IMG/VR virus record: IMGVR_UViG_3300042891_000711
Span: 1-64,000 of that record
Length of the DNA: 64,000 bases
Strand: one strand, 5' to 3'
Numbering within the stretch: the first letter of the stretch is position 1; each line of letters begins with the position of its first letter. This document shows positions 4,455-52,421 of the stretch, one piece after another. A model generated the notes under the pieces. That model did not search any database. It was not told where the DNA came from and worked only from the letters and a program-made list of their open reading frames with translations. Made by a program: the position numbers and the translations under genes.

Positions 4455-4496
4455 ACAACGCATATAAATACATTTCAATAAGGAAGATAGCGATCA

Positions 4497-4733
4497 ATGG
4501 CACAACACGATTCAATGGTAAGAGGCAACACAGTCTACGTTAAGAATGACAACGTAGAACAGGCAATGCGCAAGTTCAAAAAGAACATTCAAGACAGCGG
4601 ACTAATATTAGATTTACGTGCTCGTGAATCATATGAAAAGCCTACACTTAAACGCAAACGCAAAGCGGCTGCGGCAAAACAACGCTGGAAAAAGAAATTA
4701 TCCAGTCAAACACTTCCAGCAAAACTTTATTAA
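4497..4733 (+). CDS. rpsU: ribosomal protein bS21 homolog
   Basis: VYVKNDNVEQAMRKFKK...RESYEKPTLKRKRK; late promoter TATAAATA at 4463. Confidence 0.9.
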   Translation: MAQHDSMVRGNTVYVKNDNVEQAMRKFKKNIQDSGLILDLRARESYEKPTLKRKRKAAAAKQRWKKKLSSQTLPAKLY

Positions 4734-4752: not shown

Positions 4753-4789
4753 TTGACAACTAATGTAGTATAGTGTATTATGATAAATA
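4753..4789 (+). promoter_or_regulatory. tandem sigma70 and late promoters for dnaK-hsp20
   Basis: TTGACA(4753)-17 nt-TATTAT(4776), then TAAATA(4784). Confidence 0.65.
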
Positions 4790-4793
4790 GTTA

Positions 4794-4852
4794 TGTAGAT
4801 GCCTAATTAGGGTCTACAACTACTACTTGCTTTTTATAAGGAGAAAACAATG
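4794..4852 (+). promoter_or_regulatory. ROSE-like RNA thermometer in the dnaK 5' UTR
   Basis: hairpin TGTAGATGCCT-AATT-AGGGTCTACA, then CTTGCTT-TTTAT-AAGGAG, pairing UUGCU with the SD around a bulged G. Confidence 0.7.
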
Positions 4853-6766
4853 AGCAAAAATACAATCATAGGTATTGACCTAGGCACCACTAATTCTTGT
4901 GTGGCCATTCTTGAAAATAACAAATCACGTGTAATTGAAAATAACGAAGGTGCTCGTACTACACCAAGTATCGTTGCCTACGGCGATGAAATTATTGTAG
5001 GTGCTAGTGCTAAACGTCAAGCAGTTACTAATCCAAAAAACACAATCTACGCCAGCAAACGACTTATTGGTCGTAAGTTTGATGAAGACGCTGTACAAAA
5101 AGACATTGACCTAATGCCTTACAAGATCGTTAAAAACGAAAATGGTGATGCATGGGTTGAAGTCAACGGTGACAAACTAGCACCTCCACAAATTTCAGCA
5201 GAAGTTCTGCGCAAAATGAAATTGACAGCAGAAGACTATTTAGGTTACAGTGTAACGCAGGCAGTTATCACAGTCCCTGCGTACTTTAACGACAGTCAAA
5301 GACAAGCTACTAAAGATGCTGGTAAGATTGCCGGCTTGGAAGTACTCCGTATTATTAACGAGCCTACTGCGGCCGCACTGGCATTTGGTTGCGATAAAGG
5401 TGATAAGAAAGACCGTAAGATTGCTGTGTATGACCTAGGTGGTGGTACATTTGATATCAGTATCATTGAAATCAGCGACATCGACGGCGAAAAACAATTT
5501 GAAGTATTATCTACCAATGGTGATACATTCCTAGGCGGTGAAGACTTTGACCAACGTATTATGGAATACTTGGTAGATGAGTTTAAGAAAGAGTCTGGCA
5601 TTGACTTAAAACAAGATATGCTAGCCCTACAACGTCTTAAAGAATCAGCTGAAAAAGCTAAAATTGAATTGTCAAGTTCAACACAGACAGATGTAAACTT
5701 ACCTTACATCACTGCTGATGCAACCGGTCCTAAACACTTGTCAGTTAAACTAACACGTAGTAAGTTTGAAAGTTTAGTTGAAGATTTAATTAAACGTTCG
5801 ATTGACCCATGTAAAATTGCTGTTAAAGACTCTGGTATTAACATCAGTGACATTGACGATGTTATCTTAGTCGGTGGTCAGACACGTATGCCTAAAGTAC
5901 AAGAAGCTGTTGAAGCATTCTTTGGTCGTGCACCACGTAAAGACGTTAACCCAGATGAAGCTGTGGCAGTTGGTGCGGCAATTCAAGGTGCGGTATTGGG
6001 TGGCGATAAGACTGATGTATTGTTACTAGACGTAACTCCACTATCATTGGGTATTGAAACAATGGGTGGTATTATGACCAAGCTGATTAAGAAAAATACA
6101 ACTATCCCAACCAAAGCAAGCCAAACATTCTCCACAGCAGAAGACAATCAACCAGCTGTGACTGTTATGGTAGCACAGGGTGAGCGTGAGTTTGTCAAGG
6201 ACAACAAAGTACTTGGTCAGTTCAATTTAGAAGGTATCGAACCACAACGTCGTGGCCAACCGCAGATTGAAATTACACTTGACATCGATGCTAACGGTAT
6301 TCTTAAAGTAAGTGCTAAAGATAAAGCAACTGGCAAAGAAAACAAGATTACTATCAAAGCTAACTCAGGTCTAACCGAAGAAGAAATTGATGCAATGGTA
6401 CGTGATGCAGAAGTTAATGCTGATGCAGATAAAAAATTGCGTGAATTAGTTGATGCACGTAACCAAGCTGAAGCACAGGTTCACGATGTTAAGAAAACTG
6501 TAGAAGAAGCTGGTGACGCGGTAACTGCTGAACAGCATACTGCAATCAATGATGCAATTACCGCGGTTGAAGAAGCCATCAAGGGTGATGATGTAGAAGC
6601 TATTAAATCAGCAATGGTAAAATTAGCAGAACCAGTAGCACCAATCTATCAAGCTAAACAAGCACAAGAGTCAGCAACAGTTGAGCCTGGTGCACAAACA
6701 GCTTCAGATGCGCAAGATGGTGTTGTTGATGCTGAATTTACAGAAGTTGACAAGGAGAGTAAATAA
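4850..6766 (+). CDS. dnaK: Hsp70 chaperone DnaK
   Basis: [31 protein letters not shown]-terminal VVDAEFTEV. Confidence 0.98.
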
Positions 6767-7230
6767 TGAAACAAGTTTACACAACCCTTGACATCCCTAG
6801 CATCTATAAGTTTGCTATCGGCTTCGATGAGTTATTTTCACAACTGCAACACTTAGAGCAACGCGGTAAGGATTCGGGCTACCCACCGTTTAATCTAATT
6901 AAACTAAACGAAACTAACTACGCCATTGAATTAGCAGTAGCTGGTTTTGCTGAAGATGAATTAGATGTAGAAATTGAAAACGGTGAATTAGTTATCCGCG
7001 GCACTAACCGTGAAGTCAGCTTAGAAGAAGCTCTTCATGACCTTGAACATAATCCAGTTGAGTATATCCATCGTGGTATTGCGGCTCGTGACTTTGTTAA
7101 ACGCATCAAGTTAGCCGAGGGTGTAGAAGTTAACTCAGCACACGTTAAGAACGGTATCCTAACAGTTAAATTGGAACAATTCACACCTGAACCAGTTAAA
7201 CAAAAGGTTGCAATTTCTTTCGAAAAGTAG
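6766..7230 (+). CDS. small heat shock protein Hsp20/IbpA family
   Basis: IGFD, YPPFNL, ELAVAGF, YIHRGIAARDF, NGILTV. Confidence 0.95.
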   Translation: MKQVYTTLDIPSIYKFAIGFDELFSQLQHLEQRGKDSGYPPFNLIKLNETNYAIELAVAGFAEDELDVEIENGELVIRGTNREVSLEEALHDLEHNPVEYIHRGIAARDFVKRIKLAEGVEVNSAHVKNGILTVKLEQFTPEPVKQKVAISFEK

Positions 7231-7294
7231 TAGTATAGTAATAAGGGTGGAGGAAACTCCACCCATCCTCAACAAAAATACAAAGAGAGAAGAT

Positions 7295-7600
7295 ATGGCC
7301 AAGGCAATTGCAAAAGTTAAAACAACACCAAACTTATCAGTCAAAGAACCCAGTATGTACAAGGTCATTTATATCAATGATAATGTAACAACTATGGAAT
7401 TTGTTATTGAAAGTCTGCGTGTGGTATTTGATATTGCCGTTGACACTGCAATTGAAATTACACAAACTATTCACGAAGAAGGCAGTGCAACAGTTATTGT
7501 GTTACCTTATGAAATGGCAGAACAAAAAGGTGTTGAAGCAACACAACTTGCTAGAGCAAATGGCTTTCCACTTGTAATTAAACTTGAACCTGCTGCATGA
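7295..7600 (+). CDS. clpS: N-degron adaptor ClpS
   Basis: PSMYKVIYINDNVTTMEFVI...IHEEG...AEQK...FPL; start moved to ATG 7295. Confidence 0.9.
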   Translation: MAKAIAKVKTTPNLSVKEPSMYKVIYINDNVTTMEFVIESLRVVFDIAVDTAIEITQTIHEEGSATVIVLPYEMAEQKGVEATQLARANGFPLVIKLEPAA

Positions 7601-9662: not shown

Positions 9663-10202
9663 ATGAGTTTTTCGGTTATGCTTGATTTAGAAACACTAAG
9701 TACCCGCCCAGAAGCAACTATCTTAACATTTGGCGCTATTAAGTTTAGCCCATACAATCAAGAGCCTATGACAGATGGTATCTACTATCGTATTAATGTT
9801 GATGAACAAATTGAGTTAGGTAGCCATGTAGACGAAAACACTGTAGCATGGTGGGGCACCCAAGCAGAAGATGTGCGTGAAGAAGCACTTAGTCCTGAGA
9901 ACCGTATTAGCCTAGAAGAGTTCACACAAAACTTAAATCGTTTCCTAGTAGGTGCTGACAATATTTGGGCACAAGGTCCGGTGTTTGATATTGTTATTTT
10001 AGAAAACTTATACAGACGATTGGGCAAACCTTGTCCATGGCAGTTCTGGCAGATCCGTGATAGTCGTACTTTGTTAAGTAGTCTAGGTGACCCACGTGAA
10101 AAGAACAAAGCAGGCCTGCATAATGCATTAGAAGATGCAGTCAGTCAAGCGCAGGCAGTCCAGTACGTGTTTAAACAAGCCGGAATTACGGAGAAACGAT
10201 AG
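9663..10202 (+). CDS. DEDDh 3'-5' exonuclease (DexA/Rv2179c-like)
   Basis: MLDLETL, WAQGPVFD, RDSRT, HNALEDA. Confidence 0.9.
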   Translation: MSFSVMLDLETLSTRPEATILTFGAIKFSPYNQEPMTDGIYYRINVDEQIELGSHVDENTVAWWGTQAEDVREEALSPENRISLEEFTQNLNRFLVGADNIWAQGPVFDIVILENLYRRLGKPCPWQFWQIRDSRTLLSSLGDPREKNKAGLHNALEDAVSQAQAVQYVFKQAGITEKR

Positions 10203-21800: not shown

Positions 21801-23825
21801 ATGATGAAAAATAAACTTAAAAAACTCCTAGTCAGTCCGTGGACTGCATTAATTACATTAGCTGTTATTGTGGTAGTAATCCTACAAGGACCTACGTTTG
21901 TAGAGTCAGTTAGACTTAGATACTTTGACACCCTCATTGGCGGCAAGGCTCCTACAGAAAATAATATCTATACTGTAAACATAGATGAAGCTACATTAGA
22001 CAAGTATGGACAATGGCCATTCAAACGTGACAAGTATGCCAACCTAATTGATGACCTGTACAAACATGGCGCCGGCCTAGTTGTTTGGACTGTTATGATG
22101 CCAGAAGCAGATCGTCAAGGTGGCGATGCGGCCTTAGCATTAGAGTTAGAAGATCATCCAGTTATCTTAACTAACATGCCAAGTCAAACAACTAAAAACA
22201 TTCCACGTAAACCAGGCAGTGCTGTTATTGGTGATGAATACAGCGACACAATTATCACCTATCCAGGTATTATTGCTAACATTCCGGAACTAGAACGTAA
22301 TGCCGCAGGTGTTGGTATTGCTAATACGTTTCCAGAAGTGGATGGTGTTAATCGTCGACTACCATTGTTTGTTGGTTATGACAATAACGTATATCCAAGT
22401 ATTCCATTAGAAGTATTACGTGTTATATCACAGGACTCAACTTTCCAAGTTAAGTTAAATGAATTTGGTGTAGAGAAAATGCGCATACCAAGTTTCCGTC
22501 CTATTAGCACAGACAGTTTGGGTCGTATCTGGGTAGACTGGAGTCAAAAGTCGACACAGGTATCAGCAGTTAATTTACCTAAAGACTTTGGTGGTGCTGT
22601 GGTTATTGTAGGCCTAAGTGCCGCAGGTTTAGCTAATCCTGTGCCAACTAGTATCGGTAGTGTATGGCCACAAGACATGCAGGCCGCTGTTATTGGCACA
22701 CTTGCTAACAACGTAAACATTGAACGTCCATTCTGGGCAGACAACGCCGAACTGTTAGCTCTTATTGTTATCTCACTTATTATTTTAATCTTAAGCCGTT
22801 GGGTATATGTTGGCTTAGGAGTTGGTGTTGTATTGCTTGCGGCAATTACACCTGTAACAATGTATGCGTTTGCACACTATAACTTCTTGTTTGATGCTAT
22901 TGTGCCCACAGCAGGTGGTGTACTGGTTATGCTACACGCTTATGGTGTTAAATTCATCAGCGAGTTCTTACAGAAACAACAGATCAAGAAACAATTTGGT
23001 AGTTATGTCAACCCTACTATTGTTGAACGTTTACAAAAGAATCCAGAGCTGATTAAACTAGGCGGCGAACGTAAAGAACTTTCAATTGTTATGACTGACC
23101 TACGTGGCTTTACTACATTAGGTGAATCGTTTGGTGATGATGTAGAAGGACTTACACAGATCATGAACGACTACATGACCGCATTGAGTATTCCTGTGCT
23201 TAAGAATGATGGTACTTTAATTAAGTTTATTGGTGATGCTAGTTTACACGTACATGGTGCTCCATTAGACGATGTTGACCACGCTAAGACTGCGGTTAAG
23301 ACAGCACTTGAAATGATCAAAGCCATTGAAGACTTTAACGTAGAACTTACAGCTAGTGGTCGACCGCCGGTTGGTATGGGTGCAGGTGTTAACACAGGTG
23401 AAACCTTAATTGGTAATATTGGTGCTAAGAGCAAGTTTGGCTATGATGTCTTAGGTGACAGTGTAAGTACTGCGGCACGGTTAGAAGGACAGACTAAATC
23501 ATATGGTGTATTACTAATCATTGGTCCTAAGACTGCTGAATACTGTAAAGATGCGTTCCCTGTAGTATGGTTAGACAACATTGCTGTTAAAGGCAAAACA
23601 ATTGGTCTAGACATTTACACAGTTGGCCGTACTAATCTTTATATGCATGAAGAATATCGTAAAGAATATACTCGAGGTTCATGGAGTAAGGCTATTGTAT
23701 GGGCTAAAAAGTTAGTTAACAATGATGATGTTGACATTAAACATTACTATGAACTAATGATTGAACGCATGGAACAGGGTGTTCCTGCAAACTGGGACGG
23801 AACATATCATGCTACAAGTAAATAA
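21801..23825 (+). CDS. CHASE2-domain class III adenylate cyclase
   Basis: VNIDEATLDKYGQWPF and DGVNRRLPL (CHASE2); three TMs; TDLRGFT, KFIGDA, YDVLGDSVSTAARLEG. Confidence 0.93.
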   Translation: MMKNKLKKLLVSPWTALITLAVIVVVILQGPTFVESVRLRYFDTLIGGKAPTENNIYTVNIDEATLDKYGQWPFKRDKYANLIDDLYKHGAGLVVWTVMMPEADRQGGDAALALELEDHPVILTNMPSQTTKNIPRKPGSAVIGDEYSDTIITYPGIIANIPELERNAAGVGIANTFPEVDGVNRRLPLFVGYDNNVYPSIPLEVLRVISQDSTFQVKLNEFGVEKMRIPSFRPISTDSLGRIWVDWSQKSTQVSAVNLPKDFGGAVVIVGLSAAGLANPVPTSIGSVWPQDMQAAVIGTLANNVNIERPFWADNAELLALIVISLIILILSRWVYVGLGVGVVLLAAITPVTMYAFAHYNFLFDAIVPTAGGVLVMLHAYGVKFISEFLQKQQIKKQFGSYVNPTIVERLQKNPELIKLGGERKELSIVMTDLRGFTTLGESFGDDVEGLTQIMNDYMTALSIPVLKNDGTLIKFIGDASLHVHGAPLDDVDHAKTAVKTALEMIKAIEDFNVELTASGRPPVGMGAGVNTGETLIGNIGAKSKFGYDVLGDSVSTAARLEGQTKSYGVLLIIGPKTAEYCKDAFPVVWLDNIAVKGKTIGLDIYTVGRTNLYMHEEYRKEYTRGSWSKAIVWAKKLVNNDDVDIKHYYELMIERMEQGVPANWDGTYHATSK

Positions 23826-43386: not shown

Positions 43387-44535
43387 ATGACAACATACGC
43401 AGATAAAGCAAACAGTTTTTATAATCAGAAAGAGAGTCACTTTATATCCTTGCGCGAACGATTGGTCGAAAGCCTGGGAGATACTTTCGAACCGTTACTA
43501 GATCGAATTGCTGAAGAATTTAAGCGCAGACATACGCAATGGGAACAATTTACTGATTTACAGATTTGTCAAGCAATTATGGTTCCTATGGACAAAATAT
43601 TAATTGACACTACAATGCAACGTAAAGTAAATCTTCAACATATTTTGAATATTTTGCATTATTTTAAAGAAACAATGATCATGGCTATTCAAGTATATGA
43701 AGATCCAACTCGCCCTGGTTATTATATTGCATGGGACGGGCAACACACGGCCCTTGTACTGTATATCTTAGCAACTAAGGTTTTTGGCCAACGTATTGCT
43801 AATTTAATGGTTCCAGTAGTTGTATACAGTATTAAACAAAAAGCAGATATACGTCGTAACTTTATTTTGCTTAATGGTGATGCCAAAGATCCTTTGGATT
43901 TTATTGATATTTTACGTCAGATGATTTGTGGTGTGCGTATCGATGGTAGCGAGGATAAAATTTGGCAAGCTGCCGAACTTAAACAACGCTATTTGGAGAA
44001 AGCTGGATTATTTGCCACCGATGCCAAGTTTGGTGATGAGAATGAATCTGGAGCATTTACTTTGCTTGCAGATACTTTATGTAGTAAAAGTGACAAGACT
44101 CTCAAAGATCCAGAAGTAACTCGAATGTTTGCAGATTATTGGGTATTAATTAACCAAGCTCGACCAGTTGACGCTAAGGAAGCTAGACAGTTATATGAAT
44201 TTTTTGACGCTTGTTTCCGTGAAAATATTACAGTAGATAATGCGTATCTTAAAGAATTTGCGCAGTTTACATTGGATTATTTTGATGCAGATTTTAATTC
44301 AAAAGGTCCGTTTTGGGATAAAGTAAAAATGGCTTATGATAAATGGTATCGTAAGGCTAATCCAGAAGGCGAATTAGATGAACGCACTGGTGAGATTAAG
44401 ATTAAGGGATTCACAAAAGAATGGAAATGTGGAGGGCCGTTCTTACTAGCTCAATTACGTGCGAGTACTAAATTGCAAGTACCTAATTACGATGCAGACA
44501 GTGATTTTGTTCCAGCTAAAAAGGATCTTTGGTAA
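43387..44535 (+). CDS. ParB/DndB-like DGQH-motif protein
   Basis: IDTTMQR...IQVY...YIAWDGQHT...FILLN; own promoter TTGACA-17-TATAAT. Confidence 0.65.
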   Translation: MTTYADKANSFYNQKESHFISLRERLVESLGDTFEPLLDRIAEEFKRRHTQWEQFTDLQICQAIMVPMDKILIDTTMQRKVNLQHILNILHYFKETMIMAIQVYEDPTRPGYYIAWDGQHTALVLYILATKVFGQRIANLMVPVVVYSIKQKADIRRNFILLNGDAKDPLDFIDILRQMICGVRIDGSEDKIWQAAELKQRYLEKAGLFATDAKFGDENESGAFTLLADTLCSKSDKTLKDPEVTRMFADYWVLINQARPVDAKEARQLYEFFDACFRENITVDNAYLKEFAQFTLDYFDADFNSKGPFWDKVKMAYDKWYRKANPEGELDERTGEIKIKGFTKEWKCGGPFLLAQLRASTKLQVPNYDADSDFVPAKKDLW

Positions 44536-45005
44536 TGGCTAAACTACGTACCCCAGACCAAGATAAACATAAGAATTTTAGGTTACTTACTGCGCAGTTG
44601 CGTACTACACCGGTTTGTAAGTTGGAAGATTGTTGCAACCCACTTAGCGACTATGAAGGACCTGGCAGTGATAGTTTATGCCGAGAACATCAACTTGAGC
44701 AAGTCGAGTATGGTGGAATGGGCAAAGCAAGTCGTCCGCATACATTTTACCGTGCTTGGGTATGCACTAAATGTAAGTACGACGCAAGACTCGATCCTGA
44801 GATTTTAGAAATTGAAGATCCATGGGATCAATTGGTAGTTATGCGCGGAGTGATGCATGGTGACCATTTAATTCGTAAGAGTGATGGCGGCAAGGATACT
44901 AAAGAAAACATCAACGCACTTTGCTGTAGATGTCATATGATTAAAACTTATAAAGAGAAAGATTATCTTAAAGGTAATAAAAATAAATCTACAGAAACCC
45001 GTTGA
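44535..45005 (+). CDS. zinc-binding HNH endonuclease
   Basis: CTKC...HGDHLIRKSDGGKDTKENINALCCRCHMIKT; TAATG-coupled to the upstream gene. Confidence 0.85.
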   Translation: MAKLRTPDQDKHKNFRLLTAQLRTTPVCKLEDCCNPLSDYEGPGSDSLCREHQLEQVEYGGMGKASRPHTFYRAWVCTKCKYDARLDPEILEIEDPWDQLVVMRGVMHGDHLIRKSDGGKDTKENINALCCRCHMIKTYKEKDYLKGNKNKSTETR

Positions 45006-45029
45006 CATAAGTAATTATCTGTAATACAC

Positions 45030-45093
45030 TATGTATTTCGTGCCTGACTTAGGGCGTGTACATAATTTTATTTGCTTAATAAAGGAGTAATAA

Positions 45094-45096
<3 letters not shown>
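45030..45096 (+). promoter_or_regulatory. ROSE-like RNA thermometer in the groES 5' UTR
   Basis: hairpin with TGCCT...AGGGC core, then TTATTTGCTT-AATA-AAGGAGTAA pairing UUGCU with the SD. Confidence 0.7.
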
Positions 45097-47002
<1,906 letters not shown>

Positions 47003-47026
47003 TAACTTAATAAGTTAGTTGTTTAT

Positions 47027-47055
47027 AAAATAGCACCTTCGGGTGCTATTTTTTT
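47027..47055 (+). terminator. intrinsic terminator
   Basis: AAAATAGCACC-TTCG-GGTGCTATTTT. Confidence 0.85.
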
Positions 47056-47107
47056 GGTTGTGCTATAAATACTACAGTAAATTCATTTAATGGGGAATAT
47101 AGGAACC

Positions 47108-51074: not shown

Positions 51075-52421
51075 ATGAGTGTATACATGATAAATGCTAT
51101 TTTAGAAGAAGTTGCTAACGAACCTAGTAAGAATGCAAAAATTGCTATCCTTACCCAGCATAAAGACAATAAAGAACTACAAGAAGTTGTTCGTCTTGCC
51201 TATGACCCAACTGTAAACTTCTTTATTAAAAAAATTCCTCAATACGAAACTAAAATGCGCATTGACTTCATGACCATGTCCGAAGCATTTTCGTTATTAG
51301 AAACGTTAAGCACACGTAAAGTTACTGGTACTGCTGGTATTAATCAGCTTAAACTTATACTCGAATGTGTATCAGCAGACAATGCAAAAGTAATTGCTAA
51401 GGTTGTGGATCGCGACCTACGTGCTGGCTTCGGTGAGTCAACAGCAAACAAAGTATGGAAGAATTTAATTCCAGAGTTTCCGTATATGCGTTGCGCACTA
51501 CCAAAAGCTGCCAAGTTAGATGAGTTTAGTTGGACAGATGGCGTTTACAGTCAGCTCAAAGCTGATGGTATGTTTGCCAATGTAAATCATACAGAGGACG
51601 GTGAAGTACAAATTCTAAGTCGTGCAGGATCATTATTTCCACAGCAACACTTTGCACATTTAATTGCCGACGTACAAAAAACATTTCCTGTAGGCACACA
51701 GTCACACGGTGAATTATTAGTTAAACGTGATGGTACAGTGCTACCACGTCAAATTGGTAATGGTATCTTAAACAAGGTACAAAAAGGTGGCGATATCGGC
51801 CCAAACGATGAGATTGTATACCTAGTATGGGACCAAATAGCTCTAACTTCAGTAGTTTCTAAAGGTACTTATAATGTACCTTATCAACTTCGCTTTGCTG
51901 AATTAGCAACACAAACGATGCGAGCAGAATGTATTGAGCTTATCGATACACGCATTGTACATAATATGGAAGAAGCACTTGCTCACTATCGTGAAATGCT
52001 AGATGCAGGTATGGAAGGTACAATTATTAAAAACGCCCTAGGTATTTGGAAAGATACTACTAGCAAAGACCAAGTTAAGATGAAACTTGATATTGATGTT
52101 GATTTGGTTATTATGGGTTTTAATGCCGGCAATGGTAAAAATGAAGCAACGTTTGGTTCTATTGTTTGCCAATCAAGTGATGGCTTATTAGAAGTAAACA
52201 TCAGTGGCTTTACAGATGAAGTGCGTTTAGAAGTACATAATAATCGAGACCGACTACTTGGTACCATTGTCACAGTTAAAGGCAACAGCATTATGCCACC
52301 GACGGGTAATAACACAAAATACTCATTGTTCCTTCCACGATTTGCTGAATTTAGAACAGACAAGCAAGTAGCAGATGACTTAGACAAAGTTATCGAACAG
52401 TTTGACAATGCTATTAAATGA
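51075..52421 (+). CDS. ATP-dependent DNA ligase (T4 gp30-like)
   Basis: QLKADG (KxDG), HGEL, VWD, EGTIIK, KMK, SLFLPRF. Confidence 0.95.
   Translation: MSVYMINAILEEVANEPSKNAKIAILTQHKDNKELQEVVRLAYDPTVNFFIKKIPQYETKMRIDFMTMSEAFSLLETLSTRKVTGTAGINQLKLILECVSADNAKVIAKVVDRDLRAGFGESTANKVWKNLIPEFPYMRCALPKAAKLDEFSWTDGVYSQLKADGMFANVNHTEDGEVQILSRAGSLFPQQHFAHLIADVQKTFPVGTQSHGELLVKRDGTVLPRQIGNGILNKVQKGGDIGPNDEIVYLVWDQIALTSVVSKGTYNVPYQLRFAELATQTMRAECIELIDTRIVHNMEEALAHYREMLDAGMEGTIIKNALGIWKDTTSKDQVKMKLDIDVDLVIMGFNAGNGKNEATFGSIVCQSSDGLLEVNISGFTDEVRLEVHNNRDRLLGTIVTVKGNSIMPPTGNNTKYSLFLPRFAEFRTDKQVADDLDKVIEQFDNAIK

Follow-up and report, generated by a model that had tools for sequence, protein, structure and literature searches.

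A large lake-water phage places the same two-hairpin RNA leader, built like the bacterial ROSE heat-sensing switch that hides the ribosome-binding site, in front of its own groES-groEL and dnaK operons. The most likely reading, which we hold with moderate confidence and in which thermal switching is inferred, is that both leaders are cis-acting translational control elements of the ROSE-like RNA-thermometer type. The window analysed is the first 64 kb of a 218,902-bp virus record with 38% G+C that is estimated to be 62% complete. A preliminary description of the sequence had proposed that the two chaperone operons, 40 kb apart, share a leader with a TGCCT...AGGG hairpin core and a TGTA/TACA base followed by a hairpin enclosing the Shine-Dalgarno (SD) sequence, and that a sigma-70 promoter would start transcription inside the first hairpin without any CIRCE or clear sigma-32 signal. 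All of these features are present, and the resemblance is real and far beyond chance. The shared architecture, the ROSE-type anti-SD/SD hairpin and the absence of CIRCE and sigma-32 signals are supported, whereas the position of the transcription start remains unresolved.

In the groES leader, hairpin I spans 45031-45063 (+) and is composed of an outer stem, AUGUAU/GUACAU, pairing 45031-45036 with 45058-45063, and an inner stem, CGU(G)CCU...AGGGCG, pairing 45039-45041 and 45043-45046 with 45050-45056, with G45042 bulged next to a U.G pair. Hairpin II, the proposed thermosensor, spans 45066-45092 (+) and contains the anti-SD UUUGCUU at 45071-45077 with bulged G45074, an AAUA loop at 45078-45081, the SD AAGGAG at 45082-45087, and a lower stem that reaches to 2 nt before the ATG at 45094. 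The dnaK leader has the same parts, with hairpin I, UGUAGAU(G)CCU..AGGGUCUACA, at 4794-4818 (+) with bulged G4801, and hairpin II at 4826-4843 (+) with the anti-SD CUUGCUU at 4826-4832 and bulged G4829, a loop at 4833-4837, the SD AAGGAG at 4838-4843 and the ATG at 4850. The bulged state of G45074 and G4829 is a prediction from the consensus structure. Downstream of the first leader lie groES (Cpn10, 97 aa; 45094-45387, +; PF00166, E 1.8e-32) and groEL (Cpn60; 45390-47002, +; PF00118, E 6e-73), whose true start is the ATG at 45390, giving MSAKDVQFG, and the unit is closed by a strong intrinsic terminator at 47027-47058 (+) with an 11-bp stem, a UUCG loop and a U tract, after which virion and tail genes follow. 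The second leader precedes one proteostasis operon (4850-7600, +) with Pfam support, made up of dnaK (4850-6766), an ibpA-like hsp20 (6766-7230) whose start overlaps the dnaK stop (TAATG, 6764-6768), and clpS (7208-7600).

The two leaders stand out from the remainder of the genome. The shared motifs TGCCT-N2/3-TTAGGG and TTGCTT-N4/5-AAGGAG occur only before dnaK (4794-4843) and groES (45031-45092), and TGCCT-N1-5-TTAGGG occurs twice in the whole record and T[TC]GCT-N3-10-AGGAG next to a gene start occurs twice, both pairs falling at the dnaK and groES leaders. Of 40 ORFs with an AGGAG SD, only these two have U(U/C)GCU within 16 nt upstream. A covariance model, R1, scores the two sites at 61.6 and 60.9 bits against 16.1 bits for the next best site in the genome; a weak R1 match at the groES-groEL junction (45320-45394, +; 16 bits, E 0.66) is not significant and probably reflects only the groEL SD region. 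Single-sequence folding energy is not exceptional on its own (z -0.7 to -1.2) and was set aside as evidence; the case rests on uniqueness and on comparison with relatives.

Searches of IMG/VR with the phage GroES and DnaK returned 18 groES loci with the leader and 80 dnaK loci, with GroES identity falling to 56% and DnaK identity to 73%, and nearly all carry the same leader. R1 finds 123 copies, 89 of them distinct, which lie before groES, before dnaK, or between dnaK and an ibpA-like small heat-shock gene (NYPPYNI...AVAGF type), the last being the classical ROSE context. In whole relatives the element is equally exclusive: a complete 329-kb genome with terminal repeats has exactly two copies (dnaK, groES), a complete 383-kb genome has two (dnaK, ibpA), and a 202-kb fragment has three. 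In the phage studied here ibpA has lost the separate ROSE-like leader that relatives keep between dnaK and ibpA. R1 found nothing at the 80 bacterial dnaK loci most similar to the phage gene or in 5 whole bacterial genomes, and so a bacterial source for the leader was not found. The phage DnaK is 67-75% identical to beta- and gammaproteobacterial DnaK.

On the 89 distinct sequences, 92.3% of cells form standard pairs, against 79.5% in shuffles (0 of 500 shuffles reach the observed value) and 43-60% when the partners are slid. Hairpin I has double-sided changes in 8 of 9 pairs around a core fixed as (U/C)(G)CC...GGG, comprising a U.G or C-G pair, a bulged G and two C-G pairs, while its loop varies from 2 to 8 nt; the groES subset changes UA to GC and AU to CG in the outer pairs. 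Hairpin II is 98% paired, with a loop of 3-6 nt and a 5′ arm that is almost invariant (CUUGCUU in 63 of 86 parsed members, UUUGCUU in 11, CUCGCUU in 5 and CUUACUU in 5); 81 of the 86 have the ROSE signature U(U/C)GCU and 5 have the variant UUACU. Only the basal pair of helix II covaries, U-A in dnaK-type leaders and A-U in groES-type leaders, and its pairing is therefore supported by conserved complementarity only. The pair counts come mainly from an alignment, A2, that was fitted to the model, which biases them. A structure-blind MAFFT alignment followed by RNAalifold recovers both helices but misaligns the 3′ arm of hairpin I, and when applied to the groES leaders alone returns an 11-pair SD hairpin with the bulged G. 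Some dnaK leaders of relatives (loci L048, L052, L054, L062, L065, L070 and others, about positions 1430-1506) carry a third GC-rich hairpin (GGGCA..UGCCC) between hairpins I and II, and many of these also have an anti-SD variant, UCUUACUU, with A in place of the bulged G.

The dnaK leader matches Rfam ROSE_3 (RF02523) over the full model at 35.9 bits (E 3e-6) and relatives score 28.7-38.3 bits, below the gathering cut-off of 43, while the groES leader gives no ROSE hit at E<=10. In this alignment hairpin I of the dnaK leader carries a GAUGCC...GGGUC segment identical to that of ROSE_3, which is the TGCCT...AGGG core of the preliminary description. We identified ROSE_3 with the experimentally dissected Pseudomonas ibpA thermometer by matching consensus numbering, namely G15 in the loop, bulged G39, the SD at G51-G54 and CCGC at 23-26 (PMC3669281). 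Searches for RF02523 in 151 Burkholderiales genomes, a 'Pseudomonas sp.' MAG and its GTDB genus (22 genomes), and 14 control genomes returned nothing, but only a fraction of first-look candidates was scored and so this result says nothing about absence. The leaders thus fit the descriptive definition of ROSE-like thermometers, with a position directly upstream of a heat-shock gene, an SD paired with U(U/C)GCU, and a predicted bulged G opposite the SD, but they fail the Rfam score test and lack the G-C clamps around the SD core said to matter in Pseudomonas (PMC3669281), the flanking pairs being A-U or U-A.

The predicted energetics are consistent with a stable hairpin I and a labile hairpin II, as in the Pseudomonas system. 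Hairpin I is predicted at -8.5 kcal/mol (groES) and -9.6 kcal/mol (dnaK) at 37 C. Hairpin II is predicted at only -0.7 (dnaK) and -2.7 (groES) kcal/mol at 37 C, and -2.6 and -5.4 at 20 C; the family medians are -2.1, -4.7 and -6.2 kcal/mol at 37, 20 and 10 C, compared with -7.8 at 37 C and -10.9 at 20 C for the ROSE_3 consensus. The modelled probability that the SD is unpaired is already 0.4-0.8 at 20 C. Nearest-neighbor models ignore the non-canonical pairs known in ROSE. If these elements are thermometers they should switch well below the 25-42 C range of Pseudomonas, which would suit lakes; alternatively, they are only mild attenuators.

Transcription of the leader with groES-groEL is shown by RNA contigs from three lake metatranscriptomes in two studies. 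Contigs from 95-99% identical strains cover 45001, 45036 or 45055 onward through groES-groEL and stop near 47010, with empty bins downstream, while the flanking phage genes have essentially no RNA coverage yet are fully covered in a DNA run, and so the transcribed unit matches the promoter and terminator. A sigma-70-like promoter at 45002-45030 (+), with TTGACA at 45002-45007, a 17-nt spacer and TACACT at 45025-45030, scores 10 of 12 and is conserved as TTGAC(A/T)-N17-TAnAnT in all distinct groES leaders of relatives. Its predicted start, at about 45036-45038, falls inside the outer stem of hairpin I, as the preliminary description noted. However, that outer stem covaries, and the -35 hexamer overlaps a second promoter-like box at 45006-45013 (+), CATAAGTA, a one-mismatch version of the NATAAATA box (CATAAATA in most relatives), which may be a T4-late-type promoter with a predicted start near 45019; contig ends cannot fix which start is used. 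The inferred dnaK promoter region (4753-4789, +) has TTGACA at 4753-4758, a 17-nt spacer and TATTAT at 4776-4781, followed by GATAAATA at 4782-4789; a (G/T)ATAAATA box is conserved in nearly all dnaK leaders of relatives, and a GATAAATA box sits 4-5 nt before hairpin I of nearly every dnaK leader. Boxes of the TATAAATA type, (T/G)ATAAATA, lie 18-36 nt before many ORFs of this genome (window 311, 4463, 47064 and 48195; genome 100937, 103243 and others), although the octamer is under-represented overall, and one at 4463-4470 precedes a phage ribosomal protein S21 gene (4497-4733, +; phrog_21469, E 2e-16) immediately upstream of the dnaK leader. These boxes suggest T4-late-type promoters whose transcripts would begin at a hairpin base, an inferred role. 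Short palindromes also overlap the -10 hexamer of groES promoters in the window (45020-45036) and in relatives' loci L010, L012 and L014-L016 (about positions 1410-1440), for example CTAGTATATACTAG or CTGCTATG-TAT-CATAGCAG; they differ in sequence but remain palindromic, and could be a 5′-terminal RNA hairpin of a late transcript or a DNA-level element. Upstream, an HNH endonuclease gene (44529-45005, +) ends with its stop codon inside the -35 hexamer of the groES promoter, and since relatives L002-L004 have unrelated sequence upstream it is probably a mobile insertion.

In the proposed mechanism, hairpin I probably scaffolds the RNA or protects the mRNA 5′ end, and the weak, AU-rich hairpin II pairs the SD with UCUU(G)CUU, leaving a bulged G. 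The ribosome-binding site would be occluded at low temperature, and as temperature rises hairpin II would melt and translation of the phage chaperones would increase, with an inferred operating range that is probably low, to suit lake temperatures. FourU, CIRCE and sigma-32 readings were rejected. No site in the genome matches the CIRCE inverted repeat TTAGCACTC-N9-GAGTGCTAA with fewer than 5 mismatches and none lies near the chaperone genes, and no sigma-32 promoter of the form CTTGAAA-N11-16-CCCCATNT was found with up to 2 mismatches per box in the 250 nt upstream of either gene.

The main rival, which we consider less likely, is that the leader is structured but does not sense temperature, such that hairpin I stabilizes the mRNA 5′ end, a role proposed by Krajewski et al. 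(PMC3669281), and hairpin II merely sets a fixed, moderate translation rate for abundant chaperone mRNAs. The predicted weakness of hairpin II at all lake temperatures and the near absence of covariation in helix II are consistent with this view. However, the element is confined to heat-shock genes, 2-3 per genome and on no other gene, it has the exact ROSE anti-SD with a bulge, and any weak SD hairpin is intrinsically temperature-dependent. It is also possible, though unlikely, that the U(G)CC...GGG core of hairpin I is an RNA-binding site for a phage or host protein, for example feedback by a chaperone or a translational repressor, and that this protein rather than temperature controls the regulon. 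The core is fixed while the rest of the stem covaries freely, and the same core is found in Pseudomonas ROSE_3, but no candidate protein was found, and in Pseudomonas hairpin II alone confers thermoregulation while hairpin I is temperature-insensitive and stays folded (PMC3669281). Protein binding could nonetheless coexist with thermosensing. A DNA operator acting like CIRCE/HrcA is very unlikely: although the inverted repeats lie at or just after the promoters and extra palindromes overlap the -10 hexamer in relatives, the stems covary rather than being conserved, the variable loop does not fit a fixed-spacing dimer site, there is no CIRCE match, and the region is present in RNA. Chance resemblance between two AT-rich leaders, for which only the unremarkable folding z-scores speak, is refuted by the comparative data.

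Near-identical DNA occurs in more than 20 lake-water metagenome runs. A megablast of the region against GenBank phages found no match and no cultured phage has a close groES, the best being 56% identical. One protein, a 674-aa adenylate/guanylate cyclase-like protein (21801-23825, +), has its only cultured relatives in the T4-like Methylophilales phage Melnitz (41% identical) and Pelagibacter phage HTVC008M (37% identical), which hints at kinship with T4-like phages of streamlined plankton bacteria. Other cargo genes encode a PA14/GLEYA-domain protein, a collagen-repeat/BclA-like protein, an Rv2179c-like 3′-5′ exoribonuclease and an ATP-dependent DNA ligase (646-1605, 1889-2788, 9663-10202 and 51075-52421). 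A broader hypothesis, which we regard as about as likely as not, is that a clade of large lake phages (complete members are 329-383 kb) runs its own heat-shock regulon purely through RNA, using cold-tuned ROSE-type thermometers, duplicated onto dnaK, ibpA and groES-groEL, that scale phage chaperone synthesis with water temperature. The hairpin I core shared with Pseudomonas ibpA would then point to a conserved functional RNA module that remains unexplained. For phage ecology, it would mean that abundant lake phages sense temperature themselves to adjust the folding capacity used for virion production, and the 89 natural variants offer material for studying how hairpin stability sets the switching temperature.

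ROSE-like thermometers are known from bacterial small heat-shock genes and, more recently, ABC transporter genes, and our literature searches found no report of ROSE-like elements in phages or before dnaK or groESL, and nothing relevant on the freshwater-2 motif; if they sense temperature, the leaders described here would be the first of this type in any virus and the first on dnaK or groESL. The phage thermometers listed in the papers we found, lambda cIII, SPbeta blyA and a gut Caudoviricetes sigma-70 gene (PMC11182007), place a temperature-responsive 5′ UTR in a phage genome, but they use alternative structures or are fourU type, sit in temperate phages or prophages, and are not on chaperone genes. 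The freshwater-2 RNA motif (RF02980) is also a hairpin-rich leader that ends in AAGGAG and AUG and gives weak matches to both leaders, but the scores are only 20.2 and 23.6 bits against a cut-off of 49.9 and the matched pairs are largely non-canonical. Classical ROSE elements of rhizobial hsp genes and enterobacterial ibpA (RF00435 and RF01832) share the anti-SD signature, the bulged G and the control of heat-shock genes, but have three or four hairpins, are about 70-120 nt long, and gave no hit here at E<=10. The closest system is the short ROSE-like thermometer of Pseudomonas ibpA (RF02523; PMC3669281), which differs in its genomic setting and in a hairpin II predicted to be about 5-6 kcal/mol more stable than in the AU-rich phage element, but which likewise has two hairpins only, a stable hairpin I carrying GAUGCC...GGGUC with a U.G pair and a bulged G, a hairpin II that pairs U(U/C)GCU with the SD around a bulged G, and a start codon within about 10 nt, and in relatives of this phage the element also precedes an ibpA-like gene.
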